Source of the DNA: Klebsormidium nitens
Lineage: Eukaryota; Plantae; Klebsormidiophyceae
Length of the DNA: 64,000 nucleotides
NCBI GenBank assembly: GCA_000708835.1
Contig: DF236956.1
Span: 124,001-188,000 of the forward strand
Direction: 5' to 3'
Below, in pieces: positions 1 to 37,600 of this stretch. Position 1 is the first letter of the stretch. The number at the start of each line of letters is the position of its first letter. Position numbers and translations under genes: made by a program. The notes below the pieces were generated by a model, which saw only the letters and a list, made by a program, of their open reading frames with translations, did not search any database and was not told the DNA's origin.

Positions 1-179
1 TAAAAAGACCACGTTTTTAAGAAATGGGATGCTGTCTTCTCTTCAAACCCAATCATGTTGCACTTCAAGTAGTGAGATTGAACAAGTAGCAAAGATCTTT
101 TTGCAGCACATCCACTCAAGCTCTATGAGTGTGCAAGAAACCTTCCTGATCTCCATACTTTCTCGTGCGGGTGACTCAC

Positions 180-2514
180 CTGAGCGTCATGAGACCCCAG
201 AAAATCGGAAACGCGATCTTCTCCGCGACGCTGGTCCCGACCACCAGGGGCAGCGCGTTCCAGTAGATCCCGTGATGAAACGACTTTGCGTCCGTAATGC
301 ACTCCGTGGTCACGTTCAGGTTGCCAGTCCAAGCCGCGCGCGCGGCGCTGAAGTGGGGGTGATGAACCATTTCGATGGGGGGGTCGCAGCCGAGAATGTA
401 GTGGGTGCACCCGGGAGTCTGGTCGCACTTGTGAGCCAGGCAGCTGTGGACTCGGGCGACGGCAAAGAGGTACCACAGGGCGCCGAACACCTACCAGGGG
501 GAGGCAATAGCGTCAGGACGTGAACCGAGAAACAACGTACCCGGGGCGAGGGAGTGGGGTAAGAAGGATTAGAAGCTAGGAGAAACGTGGGGTAAGAAGA
601 GGAGATTAGCGCGAGATACAGCTGGCAACAAGCAGGAAACGAGGACCCCGGGAGGAAAGGCTGCTTTCAAGAAGCAGAAATTTGAGAGGGGTGTGCGGAG
701 AAAAGCCCTTTGAAAGTAAAGGAAGAGAAGCGAGTCGGAAGGCTGGAGAGCGAAGAAGTTTTGCGAACGTTGGTATTAGATGAAGGTGTCTTTCTCGCCT
801 GAGCGTTGAACAGATAAGTTAGGAACGTGCGGGATAAAACGAATCAATCATTTCCAACTAGATTCAGTGTTCCGACGATGACGGGTTGTGGAATTTGCAG
901 CCTTTGCGAACGGGAAAGGAAGCCTGTGATTTCGGGAGCCAAAGGCGCCCGGAATCACACGTATGAGCACCTTTGAATTTTCCACAGACTAGGCTATGAC
1001 GTGCTTACGTGCGCGGCGGTGACGTAGGCTGCCAGGTTGAGGACGAAGCCCCACCAGGAGCCCCAGAAGATGTACCCCACCACGCGCTGCATCCGACGAA
1101 CTAGAGCGCAGTACCGGAAGAGCCGGATGATGAACTGGACGAGAAGAGCGAAGAGGAGCACGGTGGTCGCGCTTGCGGTGGAGCCTGACGTCATCAAGTG
1201 CGGAACCAGGATCCAGATGGTGAACTAGAAAGGGGGAGAAGAATGAAGGATGAGGAAAATGAGCAGGAACTGAGTGTGTAAGAGTGCATGAGGATGATGG
1301 AAAGCAGACTTTGAAAGAAAGCGTGCTGCCGTTTCCAGACAGTGACTGATGAGCGCAGCAAGCTGCCGTTAGGAGCCCTTTGTTGTCGGACGATTCGAAT
1401 ATGCGTTCTTTACAGGCGGGCACATTGTGGCAGAGGCTCTTCAGGAACAAAAGGTTCTCCTACTTCCGAGGTGCAAGCAATCCCATTCTTGCCTCCTACT
1501 TGGAGCTAATGTCGGTTCCATTCGATTGGAGGGTATGCTTCAAGGAAGTTCTGCTGAACCAATCTGCTGGTTGTTTCATGTCCTTTTCAATCGTCTCAAC
1601 TTTGAAATGGATTCGAGGCCAGTGACATAAGTTGCGTGTTTTTAAGTCAAGATTGAGCAGTCACCTGCGGGCACGGCAGAATGACGAGGATGTCCAGAGC
1701 AAGGCCCCCGCGCAGAACGTGCACGTAGTTCATGGCGACTTTGCGCGGGCTGGTCACTAGCGCGCCGATCCCCAGTTTCAGCGAGGAGCGCGAGACATAT
1801 GCCGTGCGGAACTGGAGCCACATGTTAAGAATGTAGAGCACGTCGTTCATGGTGCGTAACACTGTAACGGCGATCGCGAACGGCTCGTGGACGTAGACGC
1901 ACAGCTCGGAGAGGTCCACCGCGAGGAGGTAGAAGAAGAGGGGGTCGACCACCGTGCCACTCAGCAGCGACAGCAGGAAGACCCGGTTCCACACCTGGTG
2001 GAGAACGAGATGATACGTGGAATATCAGAGAAGCTTGTGGGAGCATAATTCTCATGTGAAAGCTTCTGGTTGATTCGCACATTTTGGTAGAGAAGCGAGG
2101 GGTTTTACAATTGAGAAGCAAAATAGCTTCCAAGGTTCGAACGGAGACTGGTCCAGTACAAGCTGCAGCAGGGACTCGGAACTTTCCAGGAATGTCTTTG
2201 AGATTCAGATCTAGGAGTCTTTTTCTGAGTTTCTCGCAGCTGCCAACTGAGATTGCTCTACTCCGAGCAGGGCTGATGTATAATCTGCTTAGCTCACCAT
2301 GATAGCCTTTGAATGAGGATTCAATACTGTGTCGAACCAGAGCCATCTCTTGCCCGCCCTCCTCAACGGCTGGTCTTCGACCTCTTCGAAGAACTGCAGC
2401 TCCCCACTCGAGCCCCCGCGATGCCTTCGACCGTAAACCTTCCATTCTGCGGGACCTGACTCGACCTCACTATCCCTCCTTTCACTGCTGGGGTTGTCGG
2501 CATTCTCAAGAGGC
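180..2514 (-). CDS. CNGC: Cyclic nucleotide-gated channel, CNGC2/4 (group IV-B)-like, copy 1; partial (3' exons lie beyond the left edge, first exon unresolved)
   Basis: GT-AG exons at 2514-2298 (...WFDTVLNPHSKAIM), 1994-1665 (VWNRVFLLSLLSGTVVDPLFFY...ALDILVILPCPQ), 1224-1009 (S4/S5: RLFRYCALVRRMQRVVGYIFWGSWWGFVLNL) and 490-180 (...GIYWNAL...KIAFPIFWGLMTL). The motifs match plant CNGC S1-pore segments, and three exon lengths (330, 216, 311 nt) equal those of copy 2. Confidence 0.92.
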
Positions 2515-4137
2515 CTGCGTTATTTGCAAGACAAGAGAAGTCTGAGTTGAGATTGGAACCGCATTCTGCTGCGACCTGATGAAAGCCTGATTGAGAAGGT
2601 ACCTTATGTGGCCAGCGTTTCTTCCCTGACTGAACGGTTAGGATTCATGAGTGACAACTGAGAGCAAGCACTATGTAAGAAGAGGCGGAACTCAGATGGG
2701 AAACCGGGTCAAGTTGAATCTGGTCTTGCAAACGGGCATGAATTGTGAAACCGAGCACCAAACTAGCTTAGGTCAAACTGATATAACTTTGTTCTGCTCA
2801 GTGGCCTAAATTCTTTGAACCTTCTTCTCTTTGCTCTCATTCGAACTGGCACTGATTGGAGCTGCCTGTGTCATGCAATTCTGCAGGCACCTCTGCTAGC
2901 AGCTGATTGCAGGCTGGATGCACATTTGAACAGGCCACTGCTCCTTGCTTAGCAAAGCTTTGGATGAAGTAGATGCTCCTAGCAGGCAGTTTACTGGATT
3001 AGGGCATAGGAGTCTGCTGCATCTGCCGTAGACCGCTGTGTGCTGAAAGCAATTAACAATTTGAATAGGCTCTCAAGAGCTGCCCTTCTCATTGCCAGTT
3101 TTTGAATCAGAGAATATTCTTAGCCGTTTTTTGCCTGACGCGCAGCCATCACGATGACGTAAGCAGCCAAGTGCACAGATTACTGGCTGATCAAGGACGT
3201 CTCACGTTTCAGTTTCATGGTTTCGAAGAAGGTGGTAAGTAACTGGAGGTTCTGAGAAGCGCACCTGATTCGATTGCGGCCCCCCATAACCCCCCCCTCC
3301 GCAGGCTGGCTCTTGGGAGCTTAGACACTAATACAATGTAAAGTTGGCCGAGACATTATTTGGTGCGGCAAGTTCCTTCATGACCGGCGCTTGCTGCGAC
3401 TCAGAGCCACGATCCGCAATTCTTCCCGTCATTGACGCCCTCCGATTGCCCCAGTCACACCCAATTGGAATCTTGAACAGTGGCAGACGTAGAAGCTTTG
3501 TAAGCCCCGATATTCGTTTCCTTTGGAGGCAGCCCTTGCAAGGACGCTATACAATCTTCACAATTACAAGGGAATTCAGAAAAGGAGATTTGTCCATACT
3601 CCTAAGTGATTTCCGTGACAGCCTGCGACTTGATCAGATTGGAGGTCCAAGAGATTGTGAAAGGCTGCATTTTTGGCCAGGTCCCAAGGCTAGTAGCTGT
3701 ATCATCGAGTAAAAGAAAGCAGCAATCCTATCTAATTCAACTTCACGTGCCAGGATTAATGTGAAAATGTCGTCACAGTGATGCCATGGCATGGATCAAA
3801 TCAGCAGCTTGCATCATGATTGCGTCATCAGAGATTCAGGAGACTTGAGAATGACCTGTTCTCAGATAGGCTGGCCGCTGCACTGACGGATTGGCATCAT
3901 GATCATCTCTTAACCACAACAGAAAGCAAAGTTTCATATTGAGATATTTTCACTAGACTCGTGCCAAGGCCGGCTGAACCTGGTGAGCAGGTTCACATAA
4001 TTGCTTACCGTCCAATCAGCTGGTCAGGGTACCCACACAGAGAGCGGCTGTAGCGACCTCACTCTCCTTCCTTAATTTAGGGTTCTGCACATGGCGTGCA
4101 CGCCAGAAAAACACCACGTGAAACAGCACGTTTGAGG

Positions 4138-5255: not shown

Positions 5256-8200
5256 CTAGTAATCTTGCGGCTTTGGCGATGTGAACATAGCAGTATACAT
5301 ACGTAACTTGTCTCTCGTCTGGTCGTCCGACCTACTGCGGTCGGTCAGCTGTCCTGGCAGGCCCGCGGGCGCGCGCGCGCGGCGGCTGGCCGCAGCCTCC
5401 TTGTAGCGTCGCCACGTCAATTGAATCGTCACAGCCGCCCAGGTGCGCCAATGCTACAAAGAAGAAAGCGCAAAGTCGATGATATTTTTTGGTCGTCTTC
5501 GAATGCACGCTGCGGAGGTGTCTAGCTCTCACTTGAGTGGACTCTCGGAGTTGCGGAAACGAAGACACGTATCGCCTGTTGCAAGAGATACGCAGCAAGG
5601 ACTGGGATCTCGTCCCACCAGGGCTGCCGAACACTCTTTCGTTGAACGCTCTGGAAATGCCTGAGGCATGCGTGATGGGAAGAAAGTACAGAGGAGCGAG
5701 ACTAAATCTCCAGCAGGTGACAGTATGTTGCGAAGAGGAAAAGGCTGTCTGCGCACTCGAAAATCCGCCAAACTGGCAGGCGGACTAAAGACACTTGACA
5801 TGAACTAAAGACACTTGACATGCTCACTGTTGTGGAGTAACTTCCACAACAGTGAGCAAGTCAAGTCGACCAGTCAAAGTCAGAGGACTCTATACAGCTT
5901 ATATCATTTGCCACCCTCACCGGCGAGTAATGTCGAATGGTGTGCCGCAGTTTCTTGCTCTGCAGGCGCTGCTGGAAATGCGATGTGACGTACATCAAGT
6001 CGTCTGCCTCCAGCGCAAACGCCTCCACGGTGTCAACGCAGTCCAGGCTGCACCACAGGACAATATTGGTCAACACATCCCCACATTGAATCTTTGACGA
6101 GATTGTCCCAGCTGCCCAATCTCAAACCGCAGGCGCCTTCCACACAGCCTCGTCAGGATTACCTGTTTCTGCGGTTACCCAACTTACCATGATCAACCTA
6201 CGGGATTCGAACCTGTGTCGTCGCCATGAAAAACGCGTAATCGGAAGTGTCCAGATAACTGCTGCCGTAATGCTTCCAGAAGCGGCCAGCCATCTGAAGA
6301 TCTCGTGGATTTTAAAAAAGCTCTCGGAAATTGTGTAGGCGGCACAGATGCACAAAGGGACAACCTGCTAGACTAGAGAAACGTATCCCCTGGAAAAAAG
6401 CATCTGGGACGCTGAAGTCTAGCTAACCTGGCGGTGGAAAGCGGGAGCCGGTTCCGATCCGCAGTGCGCGAGAGACCCCACGTGAGAAGCTCTTCCCCGG
6501 TGAAGTCCCCCGGGCCCAGCAGGGCGACGCTCGGGCGGCCCCCGAAAGTGTGCACGTTGCGCAGGCGGCCGCGCACAAGAAGCAAGAGCCGCCGCACGGG
6601 CTCGCCGTCGCGCATCAGAACGAGGCCGCGCGTAAAGAGCACGGGGCGCAGCCGCTCGCACAGAATGTCGAGGAGCAGCGGGTCCGTGTACGAGAACAGC
6701 GGGATCTGCGCGCACGTTCGTGAGACATCTTGAAGACTCCCCAAAGAAAGCACATAAAAGAACTTCCGTTTCTCCTGTGAAGCCCCTGAGTGATTTATCA
6801 TCGCAATGCCTTTCTGACAGAACAGGACGGTGGTCCGGACACTCAAAAAACAAAGCAATCAAATGGATCGATCTTGCGCTTCTCGTCTAACTCTTTTCTT
6901 CGGAGGCCAATCTGCTTGAAGGGTCGGTAAATCAAGCAAGACCTCTCAAGCTTTGCACCTTTCGCAGGCACGTTCAGTGTGGCAGGAAAGTCCAGAAAGC
7001 AAAGGTAAACACTCAACATACCCTCTTGTGACCAAAGCGGTCCCTTGTTAGCTTGGTTCGCTTCTCACCTTCCTGACGAGGTCCAAGCAGAGATACCGCT
7101 TGATGTCCCGCCGCAGCCCCTCTGGCAGGTCGCGCGTCATAGCCTCCTCGTCGATGCCACGTGTCGCCGCCCAGTGCTGCTGCTCGTAGTCGTCCACGCG
7201 CTCCTGCAGCGGGATCGGCAGCTGCCGCCGCGCCATCCACCACTCCAGGTCCTGCCGGCGCGCGCGCATCCGGTCGACGCGCGTCCACAGCGACTGGAAG
7301 AATACCTGAGAAGGTGCACGGGAAGACGGGGGATTGATAACTGCAGAGCTGACAAGCGTACGACGCGTGATCCTGAAGCGCCCAAAAGAAGATACGGACG
7401 TTATGCGCCTTGTTTACAGAAAGTTTTGACGAGCACGAAGAATCGTGATGAACTTTAGAGATCCTCTAAAAAGGATCTTGACAGAACAAATATACTGAGA
7501 GCCCTTTTCAGGGCTGGACTTTCGAGCTTTGGAAGCCGGACTTGACGAATCTCGAAGTTGCACCCCTGTAAAGCCCCTGACGAAATGGAAAAGTAGGTGC
7601 TTACCTGGATGTTTCCGATGAGCGCGGAGAAGAGCATAAGGCCCGACATCACGAGGACGAGACTGAAGAGCGTCTCGGAGAAATCATCGGTGGGCGTGAG
7701 GGCGTTGCAGAAAGAGCTGTACGGGAGAGGAAACTGTAGGTGCTTACCTGGATGTTTCCAATGAGCGCGGAAAAGAGCATTAGGCCCGACATGACCAGGA
7801 CGAGGCTGAAGAGCGTCTCGGGGAGATCATCGGTGGGCGTGAGCGAGTTGCAGAACGAGCTGCGCGGGAGGAATCGTATTGAATGCTCAGGGCAAGTTGG
7901 CGTACTACAGCTCGCGTATCGAGCCACATTCCGTCCCAAAACCCCTGACGTCTTAAACGGACTCACTGTTAAAACTTTCCCAGACAAGAGACATGATTTC
8001 GTATCTGCTCCCCTTAGCTGCTCTGCCACGACCTAAGCTTCAGCTTTAAGGAACTTCATAATATTTTGAGCATCATGGAGGACAGCCAGAGACTATAAAG
8101 AACCTTCCCAGCAATCAGCTTGTTAACAGTGCCGGCGAAAACTTACCTGAGCGTCATGAGCCCCCAAAAGATGGGGAATGCAATCTTCTCGGCGACGCTG

Positions 8201-10952
8201 GTCCCGACTACTAGCGGCAGAGCGTTCCAGTAGATGCCGTGGTGGAACGTCTTCTGGTCTTGCACGCATTCCAGCGTTACGTTAACGTTCTGCGACCAGT
8301 GAAGGCGGCCGATGCTTATGTTGGGATCCTTGGCGAACTGGATGGGGGGCTTGCAGGCCAGGTAGTGGGGGATGCACCCCGGGTAGCGCTCGCAGTGGTG
8401 CGCCAGGCAGGAGAACACCCGGGACACGGCGAAGAGGTACCACAGGGCGCCAAAAACCTGCGTAGAAAAGAAGGCTTTTGGCCTCGGGTCCATGCAGAGA
8501 ATGTGAGCGGGGAAAGACTCGGAGTACCGCGTGTCCAAACGGGGAGACAGAAGAAAGTATTTGAAGAAGAGGAGATAACACTGTTAAAACCCGGAGAGAG
8601 AGGGAAAAGTGCTGGAGGCGGGGGCGTCCATCGTGGATAATTAGCGTGAGGTAAAAAGGAAATGTCATAAAATCTTGTATTCGAGAAGTTGAAGTTTGGG
8701 GGTTGGTAAGACTCGTTAAGTTTTGACCTGAGTGAGAAGGTAAAATCTTCACTTAAGTGAGTTCCTAAGTTGGCTAGTGGTAGTTTGGTTAAGCTTCCTT
8801 CCAAAGTTGGTAGAGTTGCTTGAATCAGCAGCTTGCGCTCTCAGTAACGAAGATTCGACTCTGACTGATCAGGCCCTTGAGAGCCAGCTTCATCTTCAGA
8901 CGCCGAGACGGACAAGATGTTCATTTCATCCTTCTCAAGTCTGGAATTCTTAGCCACTCCGCATTCGCCGCCAATATAATCTTACTACTCAAAGCTGAAG
9001 CTGTGTCTCAACCTAACCTACAGAATCGGTGTGCGCTACGAAAATCGACTAATACGTCCTTACGTGTGCGGCGGCGCAGTAGGCTGCCAGGTTGAGCACG
9101 AAGCCCCACCAGGAGCCCCAGAAGATGTACCCCACCACGCGCTGCATCCGACGAACTAGAGCGAAGTACCGGAACAGGCGGATGACGAACTGAAACAGCA
9201 GGGAGCAGAGGAGCGTGGTGGTAGCTCTCGACGTGTTGCCGGACGTCATGAGGCGCGGTACCAGGATCCAGATGGCGATCTGGGGAATGGAGATATGACG
9301 TCAGCATGGTTGCCGTTAGCATGGAATTGACGTCAGTAATAGCGCGTTATATGACAGGCAGGGCTAAATTTGGGGCGCTCTCGATGGGTTGAGTTGCATT
9401 CCGCGTACGAAAAGCGAATAAATGAAACTGAAGAGAGCTTTCTGATTCCGAGCAGACTTCCTTGATTTGCCAGATACGTATCTTGTGGATGCTTACATCA
9501 GCCCTTGACTGCACGAACTGCTTCCCGTATTCTTATTAATCATTTCAACCTTACCTGAGGACAAGGCAAGATCGCCAGGATATCGAGCGCGAGCCCCCCG
9601 CGCAGAATGTGCACATAATTCATGGCGACTTTGCGCGGGTTGGTCACCAGCGCCCCGATCCCCAGTTTCAACGAGGACTTCGAGACATACGCCGTGCGGA
9701 ACTGGAGCCACATGTTGATCAGGTAGAGCACGTCGTTTATGGTGCGTAACGCCGTAACGGTGATGGCAAAAGCTTTTTGGACGTAGACGCAGAGCAGTGT
9801 GGTGTCGACCGAGAGGAGGTAGAAGAAGAGGGGGTCCACCACCGTATTGCACAGCAGAGATAGCAGGAATACGCGGTTCCATATCTGCACAGAGACGGAG
9901 CATTTCAAAACGTTTGAGCTGCAAAAGAGAGGTATTCAGAAGAAGGCGTCCTTGAGATCTAGTCTCCCCAGACTTGGTTACAATTGAAAGGCAGGGATTG
10001 CGGAAGTTTTGATAGGATCCCTAAGCTGAGATGAATTTCAGAAGGTTGTACTCTAAGAGCTGCAGCTAGGCCCGCGTTTCCAGAAAGCTGTCTAGATTAT
10101 CAACCAAGCGATAGAAAACCAGATGAGTACACAAAGTCTTGTTATCGGCTACTGCTCGGCTTTGCTCACCCTGACTGCGCTCGAGTGCGGGTTGAGCACG
10201 GAGTCGAAGCAGAACCACTTTCGCGCCGACTTCTTCCAGGATTGTTCGATCATGTCTTCAAGAGGGTCGCTAAGCTCCCCGCCCGAATCAAGGCGCTGCA
10301 ATGCATCATAGACCTTCCATCCCACGGCATTCGATCCAAGCTCATGGTGGCCCCTCTCACTGCTGGGGCTGTCGGTTTCCTGAACCGGCCTGCACAACAT
10401 TTGGAAAGCGGCAAACTCTGAGCACAACCTAGTTACCACCATGTAAATGTGCTGACGTTTACAGTGCCGAAGCTGGCCATTGTTCCAGCTGAAAGCAGCC
10501 CCCTGTCGAGCGCACAAACCCGCCTTTTACCACAAAGTCCCGAGAAATGCATCAATAGCCATGTCAGAATCGCACCTTCTGGCTGGTTCACTGGTGGCCA
10601 AGCTTCCAGGGACCGCTGGATACAAAACAAAGCGGAAGCAAAGAGACCGATGGCAGACTGCTCGATCCGTGCTCAAATTCATCAACTTACCAAGCTCCTT
10701 GGTAATGTCAGTCTGATGATCAGTAAGTTTACCGTTGTGGGGCATGCTGAAATGATAAGCTTTGCTCAGTAAGTTGTGCTCTTCCTGTGCTCTGTGTTTT
10801 GTGCTCTGTGCTCTGTGCTTTGTGCTTTGTGCTGGGTCCTCTGTGGCTTCTGGTTTCGCTCTGTGTGCTTTGTGCTTGCTGATCGGTCTTGACAAGTCTG
10901 ATTGCGCAGCCTGAAAGCATGCCTGTCCATCAGCGTTAGAAGAAATCTGCAT
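5256..10952 (-). CDS. CNGC: Cyclic nucleotide-gated channel, CNGC2/4 (group IV-B)-like, copy 2; complete
   Basis: Exons: (10952 or 10745)-10531, 10389-10170, 9884-9555, 9279-9064, 8457-8147, pore exon 7859-7748 OR 7716-7605, 7305-7069 (C-linker), 6705-6428 (cNMP-binding domain, GDFTGEELLTW), 6047-5921, 5453-5256 (IQ motif IQLTWRRYK; ends KLRMYTAMFTSPKPQDY*). All phases are compatible. WGLMTLS, LIGNIQVF and the C-terminal tail resemble AtCNGC2/4. The start codon is uncertain. Confidence 0.95.
5784..5822. repeat. 20-bp tandem duplication in the last CNGC intron
   Basis: actaaagacacttgacatg(a) occurs twice in tandem. Confidence 0.9.
7605..7716 (-). CDS. CNGC pore/S6 exon, variant B (SFCNALTPTDDFSETLFSLVLVMSGLMLFSALIGNIQ)
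   Basis: 112 nt; acceptor ttcctctcccgtacAG, donor GTAAGCACCTAC; same phases as variant A; separated from A by only 31 nt. Confidence 0.85.
7748..7859 (-). CDS. CNGC pore/S6 exon, variant A (SFCNSLTPTDDLPETLFSLVLVMSGLMLFSALIGNIQ)
   Basis: 112 nt; acceptor ttcctcccgcgcAG, donor GTAAGCACCTAC; phase 2 to phase 0, matching the flanking exons. Confidence 0.88.
10775..10880. repeat. Degenerate 7-bp tandem repeat (TGTGCTY)n
   Basis: The sequence reads tgtgctc tgtgttt tgtgctc tgtgctc tgtgctt tgtgctt tgtgctg. It lies in the open frame continuous with the CNGC copy 2 first exon (QSTKHRA-type peptide repeats). Confidence 0.85.
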
Positions 10953-12172
10953 TTTCAAGCTTGTTGGTTACCTTGACCCGAGAAGTAGTGCAACGGAGAA
11001 CCGTCGTATTTCAGAGAACCTTCTTTATATCTCCTGGCCAAATCGCTGCAGCGCGCTCCTATCAAAGCACACCGAGACCATGTAAACCAGGGTGTTCAAT
11101 ACCAGAATGACCTTAGAAGCAGCTCTGGAACCAGGCTTTGAGGTTGCTGCCCTTCAAATCTGAGTGAACTAAAGTATCGTATTTCAAAATTTACCTTGTG
11201 ACATATGTTTCAGACCAGTGTTAGGGCAGTGTTTCAGAAAATGTAGAAATAGGATTGCAAGCATCCTGTCAACTGCTGAACGTCGTCCAGGGACCCAATG
11301 AAGGCGTGTAAAAGGCGCACCTGATTTGGTTTCGCTTGCCCATGCTTGATCCTGCCAAACCAGCCCGCAGACGCTGGCCCGAAGGTTATCCTCCAACTGA
11401 CCACGTATGTGGCACCAGCATGTTAAGCTCCAGCTTCAGACCTCCTGCCTTGTCTTCCTTCAATTTGTGCCGCCTTTGGCTCATCTGCCTCTTAAAGCGT
11501 TCGTTTCTAGAAAGGCCCAGTCACCACGGAGTCTTCAAGGTGAAACCCTGAATTGGCTTCTTCTTTCAAGCAGACGCTATCATCAGCTTCAGAAGACCTG
11601 GGGACGATGAAAGTCACCTGATTCACTGGATGAAGTCCTGGAAATCAGGTATGCTTTTCCGATGGTCGTCTGACGGGCAAGCAAGGATGTCGACAACCAG
11701 AAAGCAGGAGAGAACCATATGTCTTAGCAAAAATATATGCCGCTGAAAGGAGAGGTTTCTGTGCCAAAACTTGAAGCCCTTGAAAGGCTGCACGACTTAT
11801 GCCAGCTCCGCTGATCAAAACTTTTCCTGCTTCAGTAACTGCTTATGCTCCTCTGCGCTCCTTGTCTGGCTCCAGGGTGGAGGATGATGTCACACCCAGG
11901 TCACACCGTACAGCAACATAGATGTTGCCATGACTTCATGGGACATATTTCACATGCTCGTCGTGCAGAGCAACAGCTTGCCTGAGAAAGAGATATTTTG
12001 CGTACAATTTAGCTCAGTACTTTTCCACTTTCCATCCCCTTTCCATTCACTAAAGAGCTGACGGTGTGTGCATTTGCCAGCAATTCTGTACAGTGCCAGG
12101 GCGGCACTGAGCATGCTCATGGAAATATATGATCCACAGCGCTGTCACGTGATCTAGGACGGGGCACATTCC

Positions 12173-34600: not shown

Positions 34601-37600
34601 TGTCCTCTGCAGGATGGGCGCCTCGAGCCGCGGCACTTCGGCCGCCTCCCGCTCGTCCGACAGTCACGGCCTTTCCACCCGGGCGTCATCCCGGGCGACT
34701 GACGTCAGCGTCCCGGCCACCCCGCTTCTCAGTCAGTCGCCTGAAAGCCCAACCCCTCCCCGCACACGCTCTCCAAGTCCTCTTCGCGCGCGCTCGCCCG
34801 AACCTCCAAACCCTCCCCGCGCGCACTCCCCCGGCGCTTCCAGCCGTTCTCCAGCGCGCTCGCCTGATTGTTCAAATTCATCACGCGCGCGCTCACCGGA
34901 CCCTCCGAGCCGTTCCCAAGCGCGCTCGCCCGAACCTCTCAACATACCCTCCGCGCGCACGCCCGAACCCCTGAGCCTCGCATGGCAAGAACGCGCGGCC
35001 GCGCCGCTCGAGCGCATCAGCGAGGGCGTGATCCCCGCCCCGGCGTCGCCTGAGAGGAAGATGAGGATCCCCACGCGCTTCTCGCCGGACGTCGAGGCGC
35101 ACTTGGACGCCAAAGAAGGTGAAAGACGTGCTTCCTTTGTCGGCAGTTGGTGTTGGTTACTTGTGCCGCTTTACGACCTCCGTTCACACTCAGGATCTCA
35201 ACACCGAAACTCATTGGCGATGCGCCCGGTACATATCTGCTGATGGACTGGTCCAGGGTAGGCAGCCTTGTTCGGTCTTGGGACTCCGCTGCATTCAACG
35301 CACACGTGCCTGCTCAAGAATCTTATGAATCCATGACTTTAAGGCAGAAGGATTTGAAAATTTCGAGCGGATGCGCTACACGTCTGCCTTTTCAGTGAGC
35401 AATGTTGGTCATCTCAAAACGGCGGCAATAGTTTTCGCTAACCAATCCGGTTATCACTCCATCAGAAGCTCACGTTTCCTAGCACCACGAAGACGCTAAA
35501 ACCGAAACACGTCAGTGCTTTTCGGTCATCTGTTCTTGCTGGGGAACCCGGGCAACAAACCCGGCGCTCCGGCTCTGCTTTGCAGCAGAAGCGGAGCGCG
35601 AGCGGAGCGGATCCCGTGCATCCACCTCCACCCGGGATGACTCCTCGGCCCCGAGCCTTTGTCGCAACCCGAGCCTGAATGCCAGGAAGGGCAACGTGAA
35701 ACTCGCCCCGGCGCCGGTATCGGTTCAGGTTCCAGCGACCGTGATGTCACCGAAGCCAGCGTTCTTGAGGCTGGAGAAAGCTGGCGTCAGCCACGTGCTG
35801 TACCAAGCGACACAACATTTGGTGAGCTTCGGCAGCATCAGCTTCTTCATCTTCGCTTGCTTTGGCAATTCCAAAAGTAGACGTTGGCAGTACTTAGGAT
35901 AGCTTGATTTCCTTTAGCAACACCCGGAGGGTGCGGACCATCCGTGCTCACTCCTCTCGATCAGTTTCAGTCGGCAAACCGCAGCGAAAGGGCCACCTGA
36001 ATAATCACGGCTTGAAAATTCTTCTACCTTTTGAAAGCTTTGCTAATCAACATGAGCAACAGTCTCCACAAGCCGCATCGTTCCATTCTTAGATTGCCAC
36101 CCGCTTGCGAAGTCACACAACAGTGGGTACGCTCAGAACTGGCTCTGTAAATAACGAGTGATCTCTAGTAACCGGTTACAATTGAGGGGAATTGCACTGA
36201 AGAACCCATCGCCCTCTTTTGAACGGGGGGCCGGCTCCCTTCTTTTCGAAACGCTTCGCTTTTCCCTTATTGCGCCGTTCCACAAACCACATTTCACAAA
36301 GGGCCGATACGTTGCATAGAGAGAATCATTTCAAAGGCCGTATCGGCTATCCTTACAGGTGGTGACGCTGGCGCGAGACCAGAGAGCACGTGCCTACGAC
36401 GAGCAGCGCGGAAGCATGCTGTTTGCGTACGAGAACCCGCACCAGTGCCTCTTCACGGGGGTCGCTTGGGACCGCGCGCATCAAGAGGTGCGTCTGCTCT
36501 GAATTTTAGTCCCTGTGTCATAGACGTGCTGCTGATCTGTGTCGAAATCCTTGAAGTGGGAAGGGAAAGAGCAGTTGAAGACTGAGACGGGCCGTACGCC
36601 TTGGAAGACGGCTATCATTATGACTGGTGGCACGCTACTATTACTACTGGTCTGTTCGTTCAGGACTGGATTCGCAGTCTCTGTGTTGCGTCCAAGAGAG
36701 GAGTGCTTGCCGTGAGTGCTTTGGGTGATAGGTGTCGCCTTAATCGGAAACTTTTCAAGGACTAAGCTGCACATGATCCAGCCAAGTAAGGTTACGGGGA
36801 AAAATGCCCTTCAGCAAAAGATAACCGGTTTTGTTTTTGCTATCACGTGTCAAATTCAAGCAAACTTGAGATAAGTTTTTTCCTTTCGCAGCACTACACT
36901 CCTCGCTCTTGTTATAGAAACGCACACCCTTACAGCTCTTCATAGGATGACTCCCATCGCGTCATGCCATGCGTTACGTCCTTCGCGCTTTGTTCCTTTT
37001 CAGGTCCTCACCTTTGCGCATCCTCACCTGCAGATCATTCTCGTCGACGATGCAGGCTACGTCCACGTGTACAGTCTGCACCTTCCTGGGATCTCCTGCT
37101 CTCAGGTACTTGCAATTAGCGAAAAGTGTCTTTCGGTCCGCTAGCACCTTTCCATTCGAGCAGGGTTGGAGAAATTTGGAGCAGATTGGGACCCTCTCCA
37201 TTCTCAGATAAGAATCTGGTTGAGACTAAGACGACTAAAACGCTGTTCAGTGCTCGATCAGACCTACCCAGAAGGGGCGCGCGCAATCCTTCGGGGCGGG
37301 TGCGTCGGCCTTGGATAAAGGGTCCACCGAGATTGTGACTTCCTTGCGAAGCTGTCTCTTGTCCCTCCGTAGATGTGGCAAAAACTTGACCCCGAGACAC
37401 TCATCCCACGCCTCTCATGAGGAAGCGGCACCTTGGAACGGCAAAAAGCAAAAACTCCAAATGTAGCTTTCTCGAACAAACAGGTAAATGCACGTTAAAC
37501 TAACCAAATCCTCTCCCACAGCAAATTTCGTCGGACGCCTGCACGGGCGTCCTCTTCCTAGACGACTGCGACACCATCGCGGCCGCGTGCGGCGACCACG

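Follow-up and report, generated by a model that had tools for sequence, protein, structure and literature searches.

The DNA analysed here is a 64,000-nucleotide window of Klebsormidium nitens scaffold DF236956.1 (assembly GCA_000708835.1, positions 124,001–188,000 of the forward strand); coordinates below are positions in this window unless another sequence is named. The minus strand carries GAQ78048.1, annotated as a cyclic nucleotide-regulated ion channel family protein and referred to here as cyclic nucleotide-gated channel (CNGC) gene 1, in which the exon encoding the pore loop and S6 is present twice in tandem. The coding region of gene 1 (5256–11343) was modeled from splice sites and reading frames, yielding five coding exons upstream of the pore exon (11343–11321, 10389–10170, 9884–9555, 9279–9064, and 8457–8147), either copy A or copy B of the pore exon itself, and four coding exons downstream (7305–7069, 6705–6428, 6047–5921, and 5453–5256). 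From the residues RPVQ onward the model is identical to the annotated protein, the two differing in the choice of start (679 a.a. from the shorter start as compared to 683 a.a. annotated). The last constitutive exon before the duplication (8147–8457, S5 to pore helix) ends in ACGCTCAG followed by the donor GTAAGT, leaving two bases of a serine codon, and is separated from copy A by a 287-nt intron (7860–8146). Copy B is followed by a 299-nt intron (7306–7604) with the donor GTAAGCACCTAC, and then by the constitutive C-linker exon (7069–7305), which is entered in phase 0. The junction coordinates proposed in an earlier, sequence-only reading of this DNA (8147, 7859, 7748, 7716, 7605, and 7305) agree with this gene model.

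Copy A (7748–7859, minus strand; 112 nt) encodes SFCNSLTPTDDLPE followed by S6 and is the copy contained in the annotated protein, while copy B (7605–7716, minus strand; 112 nt) encodes SFCNALTPTDDFSE and then the same S6 and is not contained in it. The two are separated by a 31-nt spacer (7717–7747) that begins with GT and ends with AG, and that is composed of a copied donor flank (GTAAGCACCTAC; 12 nt, 7747–7736) and a copied acceptor flank, pyrimidine tract included (19 nt, 7735–7717). The arrangement corresponds to a tandem duplication of two 143-nt units (7582–7867), in each of which the 112-nt exon is bordered by 19 nt from the acceptor side and 12 nt from the donor side. A repeat search detected the units as a direct repeat of 143 nt with 87% identity (7582–7724 and 7725–7867), and Tandem Repeats Finder reported a period of 143 with 1.9 copies, 90% matches, and a score of 465. 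This repeat is far beyond chance, since it is the sole long-period tandem repeat in the 64-kb window. The exon copies are identical at 101 of 112 nucleotides and 34 of 37 amino acids. Their 11 nucleotide differences leave seven codons with synonymous changes only and three with an amino acid change from A to B, namely Ser to Ala (CNS versus CNA) and Leu to Phe and Pro to Ser (DDLPE versus DDFSE), the S6 portion being identical at the protein level. Each copy is preceded by a pyrimidine tract and a CAG acceptor and followed by GTAAGCACCTAC with its GTAAGC donor, and each is entered in phase 2 and left in phase 0; the copied acceptor flanks differ by a 2-nt indel and two substitutions. The sequence-only reading had described two 112-nt pore-loop/S6 copies, 31 nt apart, with 11 differences and intact splice signals, and had counted the same synonymous and amino acid changes; these coordinates and counts were reproduced in full.

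The reading frame admits one copy at a time. In the full gene model, inclusion of A alone or of B alone gives an open frame of 679 a.a., inclusion of both creates a stop inside B at codon 411, skipping of both causes a frameshift with a stop at codon 419, and a transcript reading from A through the spacer into B (255 nt) again encounters a stop inside B. The earlier claim that joining or skipping both copies breaks the frame is borne out by these premature stops, and the logic of exclusivity is upheld through the 31-nt spacer as well as through a length not divisible by 3. Because of the short spacer and the frame-breaking length of 112 nt, productive mRNAs would be expected to carry A or B. 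Plant introns below about 60–70 nt splice poorly. Intron-length data were not found in the main text of the K. nitens genome paper (PMC4052687); the introns of gene 1, the spacer excepted, measure 275–931 nt. Two recognized mechanisms of exclusivity are a distance of under 50 nt from donor to branch point and an exon length not divisible by 3 (PMC5740500). Both apply here. The first does so by a threshold taken from human exon clusters (upstream donor to downstream branch point under about 50 nt; PMC5740500), as the whole spacer measures 31 nt and branch-like motifs for B are located only inside exon A; the second does so in that the frame is lost when the exons are included together or skipped together. 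As judged from sequence, the pair also has every feature by which clusters of homologous mutually exclusive exons (MXEs) are recognized by Kassiopeia/WebScipio (PMC3923563), in that the exons are neighbors within one gene, share length and phase, have splice sites on both copies, and are homologous (90% nucleotide identity).

GAQ78048.1 is assigned to the plant-type CNGCs, in agreement with the sequence-only reading, by full-length structural alignments and by its homologs. The protein aligns with the AtCNGC1 structure (9j34) over residues 69–637 (E 7.7e-134), an alignment that covers the six-helix pore module, the C-linker, and the cyclic nucleotide–binding domain, and it also aligns end to end with MtCNGC15b (9kcu) and AtCNGC5 (9j35). 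The family assignment rests on these full-length alignments, single-exon Pfam matches being weak or borderline (cNMP_binding 27.4 bits against a cut-off of 27.5; Ion_trans weak); PF00027 is precomputed for the neighboring paralog GAQ78047.1. For the IQ-type calmodulin-binding segment expected after the binding domain, the Pfam match on the last exon is likewise weak (E 0.095, 13 bits), although HWRTWAAVTIQLTWRRY can be aligned with QWKTWAACFIQAAWRRY of AtCNGC1. The closest land-plant relatives are of the CNGC2/CNGC4 type, with 43–50% identity.

The positions of the three amino acid differences were examined with respect to the selectivity filter, which in MtCNGC15b is structurally defined as S344–Q347, with Gln347 restricting the path (PMC12284214). 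In the AtCNGC1 alignment FCNSL lies opposite LGQNL, and the filter Asn of the K. nitens protein aligns with the Gln of the AtCNGC1 GQN triplet and with Gln347 of MtCNGC15b, such that S-F-C-N represents the equivalent of the MtCNGC15b filter and is identical in A and B. An amide residue is found here as in other plant CNGCs (Gln, or Asn in the CNGC2/4 group), at the position where animal CNG channels have Glu, and the filter Asn is invariant in 120 of 120 closest homologs, the set to which the residue counts below also refer. The Ser/Ala difference falls one residue past the filter Asn, in what corresponds to position three of the classical GQN-type triplet, and the Leu/Phe and Pro/Ser differences lie immediately before the conserved Glu that opens S6. 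The residue after the filter Asn is variable among the homologs (Asp in 85, absent in 16, Ala in 15, Ser in two, and Glu in two). FGNALTP occurs in lycophyte, moss, and fern proteins and FCNALTP in a third Klebsormidium-like CNGC clade (loci L003, L004, and L005), indicating that the Ala of copy B is a state common in functional homologs; the Phe of copy B is also present in the nearest sampled ortholog, L002. The description of the copies in the sequence-only reading as alternative selectivity filters is too strong, because S-F-C-N is identical in the two and the Ala and Phe of B are seen in homologs. The part of that claim that stands is the presence of three real amino acid changes at the outer pore mouth, and A and B are more accurately described, on this alignment, as two outer-pore-mouth variants than as two selectivity filters.

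The history of the duplication was traced by comparison with related loci. CNGC gene 2 (GAQ78047.1; 679 a.a.) is a tandem paralog that is 78% identical to gene 1, has the same exon structure and strand, and lies ~2 kb downstream; its 5′ part occupies 1–3287 (minus strand) and the gene runs off the start of the window. The whole of gene 2 is found at L001 10001–16073, and its single pore exon, which lies outside the window, at L001 13508–13619 (CNS...DNLPE). The ortholog L002 is a Logan contig (run SRR23617307) with 96–99% protein identity in the flanking exons, a synonymous divergence (dS) from K. nitens of 0.376, and a nonsynonymous-to-synonymous rate ratio (omega) of 0.039. It has one pore exon with the same donor, of which the upstream flank matches that of A and the downstream flank that of B, as expected for the unduplicated state. 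The sequence-only reading had proposed a search for the duplicated exon in other charophyte CNGCs; a single pore exon was found at every related locus examined, and scans of metagenomes for the pore-exon alignment and for a degenerate exon-end/donor or exon-exon junction pattern gave no match. On this comparison the duplication is lineage-specific.

When polarized by the pore exon of the paralog, about nine of the 11 changes are assigned to B (three amino acid and six synonymous changes, none at second codon positions) and two to three to A, all synonymous, so that among the sequences compared A is the ancestral-like copy and B the derived one. Divergence between A and B (dS 0.377, omega 0.097) is approximately equal at synonymous sites to the species divergence from L002 (0.376). 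Parsimony-informative sites bearing on the order of the duplication and the L002 split conflict, two grouping B with the ortholog, one A with the ortholog, and one A with B; from these values the duplication is judged not to be recent and to have occurred slightly before or after that split. Two other histories were considered and rejected: deletion in L002 that left a hybrid exon does not fit the site pattern, and conversion of copy A by gene 2 is not supported, as intervening sites differ. Introns of K. nitens and L002 mismatch at 38–47% of positions in global alignments and provide no clean neutral rate.

Further features were noted among the related loci. In L003 (597–1283; Logan SRR23617307) the C-linker, binding-domain, and next exon are contiguous without introns, and L005 (6134–7397) has introns at both of these places; the contiguity could reflect intron loss, a retrocopy, or a contig from partly spliced RNA. 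The IQ-region exon of L005 (about 7731–7961; JGI metagenome 3300060285) contains an in-frame stop (QLA*RRYK), which might reflect a sequencing error or mark the locus as a pseudogene. K. nitens contributes only two proteins to the 120 best matches, a list in which a CNA-type clade member (55–77% identity per exon) should have placed; K. nitens may lack a CNA-type paralog or the paralog may be unannotated.

Copy B has no stop and no indel, and both of its splice sites are intact. To evaluate its coding constraint, a conditional simulation of eight to nine neutral substitutions was performed, in which the probability of at most three amino acid changes and no stop was 0.011–0.054, depending on transition bias and substitution number. 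A branch codon model compared with omega = 1 on the B branch gave a likelihood ratio test (LRT) statistic of 8.7–10.4 (p 0.001–0.003) with an omega for B of about 0.1. Both tests rest on 37 codons, and their values are indicative rather than precise. The LRT was run under two topologies and two frequency models (equal-frequency and F1x4); F3x4 frequencies estimated from four short sequences inflated branch lengths, and the F3x4 run was not used. By these tests, neutrality of B as coding sequence is rejected and the copy appears to be under coding constraint. The suggestion in the sequence-only reading that both copies are under purifying selection holds in that omega = 1 is rejected for the B branch by LRT and simulation (three nonsynonymous and six synonymous changes), with the reservation that so few codons are involved.

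Candidate splicing signals differ between the copies. In the intron preceding copy A, a CTGAG motif resembling a branch site (7890–7886, minus strand) puts the branch adenosine 28 nt from the exon. The motif, which is not part of the duplicated 143-nt sequence, is conserved in L002 (at −30). For the B acceptor, two candidates were identified by motif match only, both inside exon A: CTCAT (7765–7761, minus strand; branch adenosine 46 nt before B) and CTAAT (7783–7779, minus strand; 64 nt before B). Because the likely ancestral branch site is outside the duplicated unit, B is probably the weaker exon. The pyrimidine tract of its acceptor scores better than that of A (0.78 versus 0.67). After A (7747–7736), after B (7604–7593), and in the ortholog (L002 745–756), the intron opens with the same 12 bases, GTAAGCACCTAC; this identity, while the remaining introns are 38–47% mismatched between the species, suggests an extended constrained donor region. 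The flanking introns were also searched for competing RNA structures, with only short imperfect inverted repeats detected (12 nt at 92%; 14–16 nt at 75–79%). One of these, a 12-nt inverted repeat with 92% complementarity between 7419–7430 (intron after B) and 7968–7979 (intron before A), would loop out both copies if paired and may be chance; the inverted repeats linking the flanking introns are regarded as chance.

The explanation we lean toward, with a confidence slightly better than even, is that A and B are truly mutually exclusive exons, A serving as default and mRNAs of both kinds being made productively. In the K. nitens lineage, a 143-bp tandem duplication would have doubled the pore-loop/S6 exon of a single plant-type CNGC gene, carrying along just 19 nt on the acceptor side and 12 nt on the donor side, and the resulting 31-nt spacer would be too short for removal as an intron. 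The branch site for B would have to fall within or near the donor region of A, such that recognition of the A donor and of the B acceptor would interfere with one another, and the 112-nt exon length would lead double inclusion, double skipping, and spacer retention alike to a premature stop. Copy A, having kept the ancestral sequence and the upstream branch site, would be the default exon, and B a minor or conditional alternative. Inclusion of B would alter three residues of the outer pore mouth (Ser to Ala after the filter Asn, and Leu-Pro to Phe-Ser before S6), leaving the filter core and S6 unchanged, and the two isoforms might differ in function.

Several observations weigh against productive use of B, and many of them also speak for an explanation that we consider possible but rather less probable, namely that B is a silent duplicate within a 442-nt intron (7747–7306), that only the A isoform is made, and that B has been preserved through chance, age, or past use. 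The annotated protein uses A, the cluster of GAQ78048.1 has a single member, again using A, and searches of protein collections with the full-length protein, with GAQ78048.1 residues 300–470, and with the 79-a.a. C-linker exon returned no K. nitens transcript or protein containing B and no spliced K. nitens fragments, the matches otherwise being genomic open reading frame fragments of relatives. Conservation of the pair in related species, a feature that supports MXEs, is lacking, the paralog gene 2, the ortholog L002, and the more distant algal loci L003, L004, and L005 each having a single copy (5 of 5 loci). Most of the changes have occurred in B (about nine as compared to two to three in A), which has evolved about three times faster. 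The conserved CTGAG motif, the probable ancestral branch site, was not copied with B and serves A only, and AG dinucleotides lie between the candidate branch sites of B and its acceptor. However, the pattern of changes in B (three nonsynonymous, six synonymous, and none at second codon positions) counts against a silent copy, neutrality being disfavored both by simulation (p 0.011–0.054) and by LRT (p 0.001–0.003). Nor would a silent copy be expected to retain intact splice sites and escape stops and indels, given an A–B dS (0.377) that equals the species-level value (0.376) and introns that are ~55–62% identical between the species. The exonic signals of the copies were identical at birth, making it unlikely that B was invisible to the spliceosome.

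The same frame arithmetic that would enforce exclusivity could alternatively make B an unproductive splicing trap, in which spacer retention or a premature stop lowers channel expression through nonsense-mediated decay (NMD). Apart from the A-only and B-only forms, all products (both, neither, or the 255 nt of A, spacer, and B) have a premature stop, and precedents exist for the coupling of frame-incompatible exon pairs to decay (PMC5740500). A trap would have no need of the amino acid sequence of B, yet the changes in B avoid nonsynonymous sites; neither a conserved regulatory element nor an RNA structure that could compete was observed, the only inverted repeats being short, and we regard this explanation as improbable. 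Least credible of all is that the tandem copy is an assembly artefact of a 2014 draft genome built from 454 and Illumina reads (PMC4052687), the one assembly available for checking. The 11 substitutions, the 2-nt indel and two further substitutions in the copied acceptor flank, the unique flanks of a region free of N (as is the entire window), and a codon-structured pattern of substitution unlike sequencing or assembly error all argue against it.

A broader proposal can be built on the mutually exclusive exon explanation, one that we hold to be speculative and, as a whole, doubtful. Under it, K. nitens would use animal-style exclusive splicing to obtain two versions of the pore of a single CNGC, the exon switch would stand in for a missing CNA-type paralog, and the isoforms would differ in permeation, block, or assembly; the locus would then represent the first pore-region either/or pair in a plant-lineage channel, convergent with those of animals. 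The CNA-type pore mouth of B does occur in the separate CNGC clade of relatives (L003–L005) and in non-seed land plants, and no K. nitens member of this clade was found among the annotated proteins retrieved.

Homologous MXEs are a classic means of diversifying pore and gating in animal ion channels and are almost undocumented in the plant lineage. If B is used, the locus would provide a young and simple example of the birth of such a switch, in which a 143-bp duplication had exclusivity built in from the start. It would also inform whether so short a spacer blocks exon joining in a streptophyte alga, and the role of the residue after the CNGC filter Asn, which is Asp, Ala, Ser, or absent across plant CNGC2/4-type channels. 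The locus also flags a possible alternative isoform that is missing from the present K. nitens annotation. If B is never used, the locus would be an ordinary lineage-specific exon duplication of little wider meaning.

Two further repeats were noted elsewhere in the window. The 931-nt first intron of gene 1 contains a tandem repeat with a 21-nt unit at 10785–10833 (2.3 copies, 92% matches), and a degenerate GC-rich tandem array with a period of 33/66 nt (~6 copies, 62–67% matches) is located at 34771–34969.

The K. nitens pair is reminiscent of MXEs in animal channels, examples of which are exons 8/8a of Cav1.2 and 5N/5A of Nav. As in those channels, a tandem exon of equal length and phase affects a pore or gating module through few residue differences, and exactly one copy is needed for an open frame. 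In contrast, the animal pairs are transcript-validated, conserved across large clades, and functionally characterized, while the K. nitens pair is sequence-based, is seen in one algal species, and has three mild differences outside the filter core. Convergence among animal channel exon pairs was reportedly discussed by Copley in 2004 (cited in PMC5740500). With respect to mechanism, exons 2/3 of alpha-tropomyosin are subject to steric hindrance, and the donor lies under 50 nt from the branch point in 9% of human MXE clusters (PMC5740500). In the K. nitens pair, likewise, the upstream donor would be too near the downstream branch point and acceptor for joining, but the whole spacer is only 31 nt, such that the branch site for B would lie in the spacer or in exon A and the block is a predicted one. 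Lengths not divisible by 3 are found in 60% of human MXE clusters (PMC5740500), and the 112-nt K. nitens exons resemble such NMD-policed, frame-incompatible pairs in that double inclusion or double skipping leads to a premature stop, decay in Klebsormidium being putative.

Among plants, a literature search linking plant CNGCs with mutually exclusive exons found nothing relevant, and land-plant homologs, compared at the protein level only, gave no sign of two pore variants per gene. Arabidopsis FLM/MAF1 is a validated plant either/or exon pair (PMC3266260), and Kassiopeia lists 99 predicted, unvalidated Arabidopsis MXE candidates (PMC3923563). The K. nitens locus resembles these as a plant-lineage gene with adjacent either/or exons, predicted, like the Kassiopeia candidates, from sequence criteria. 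The FLM exons, however, differ in length (19 versus 15 amino acids), the 3′ one having been called cryptic (PMC3266260), whereas those of K. nitens are 90%-identical duplicates within a channel pore. As a channel, the protein shares S1–S6, the pore loop, the C-linker, the cyclic nucleotide–binding domain, and a putative IQ segment with the plant CNGC group containing CNGC2/CNGC4 and the structures 9j34, 9j35, and 9kcu, and shares the filter Asn with its 120 closest homologs, but has Cys in place of Gly before that Asn.

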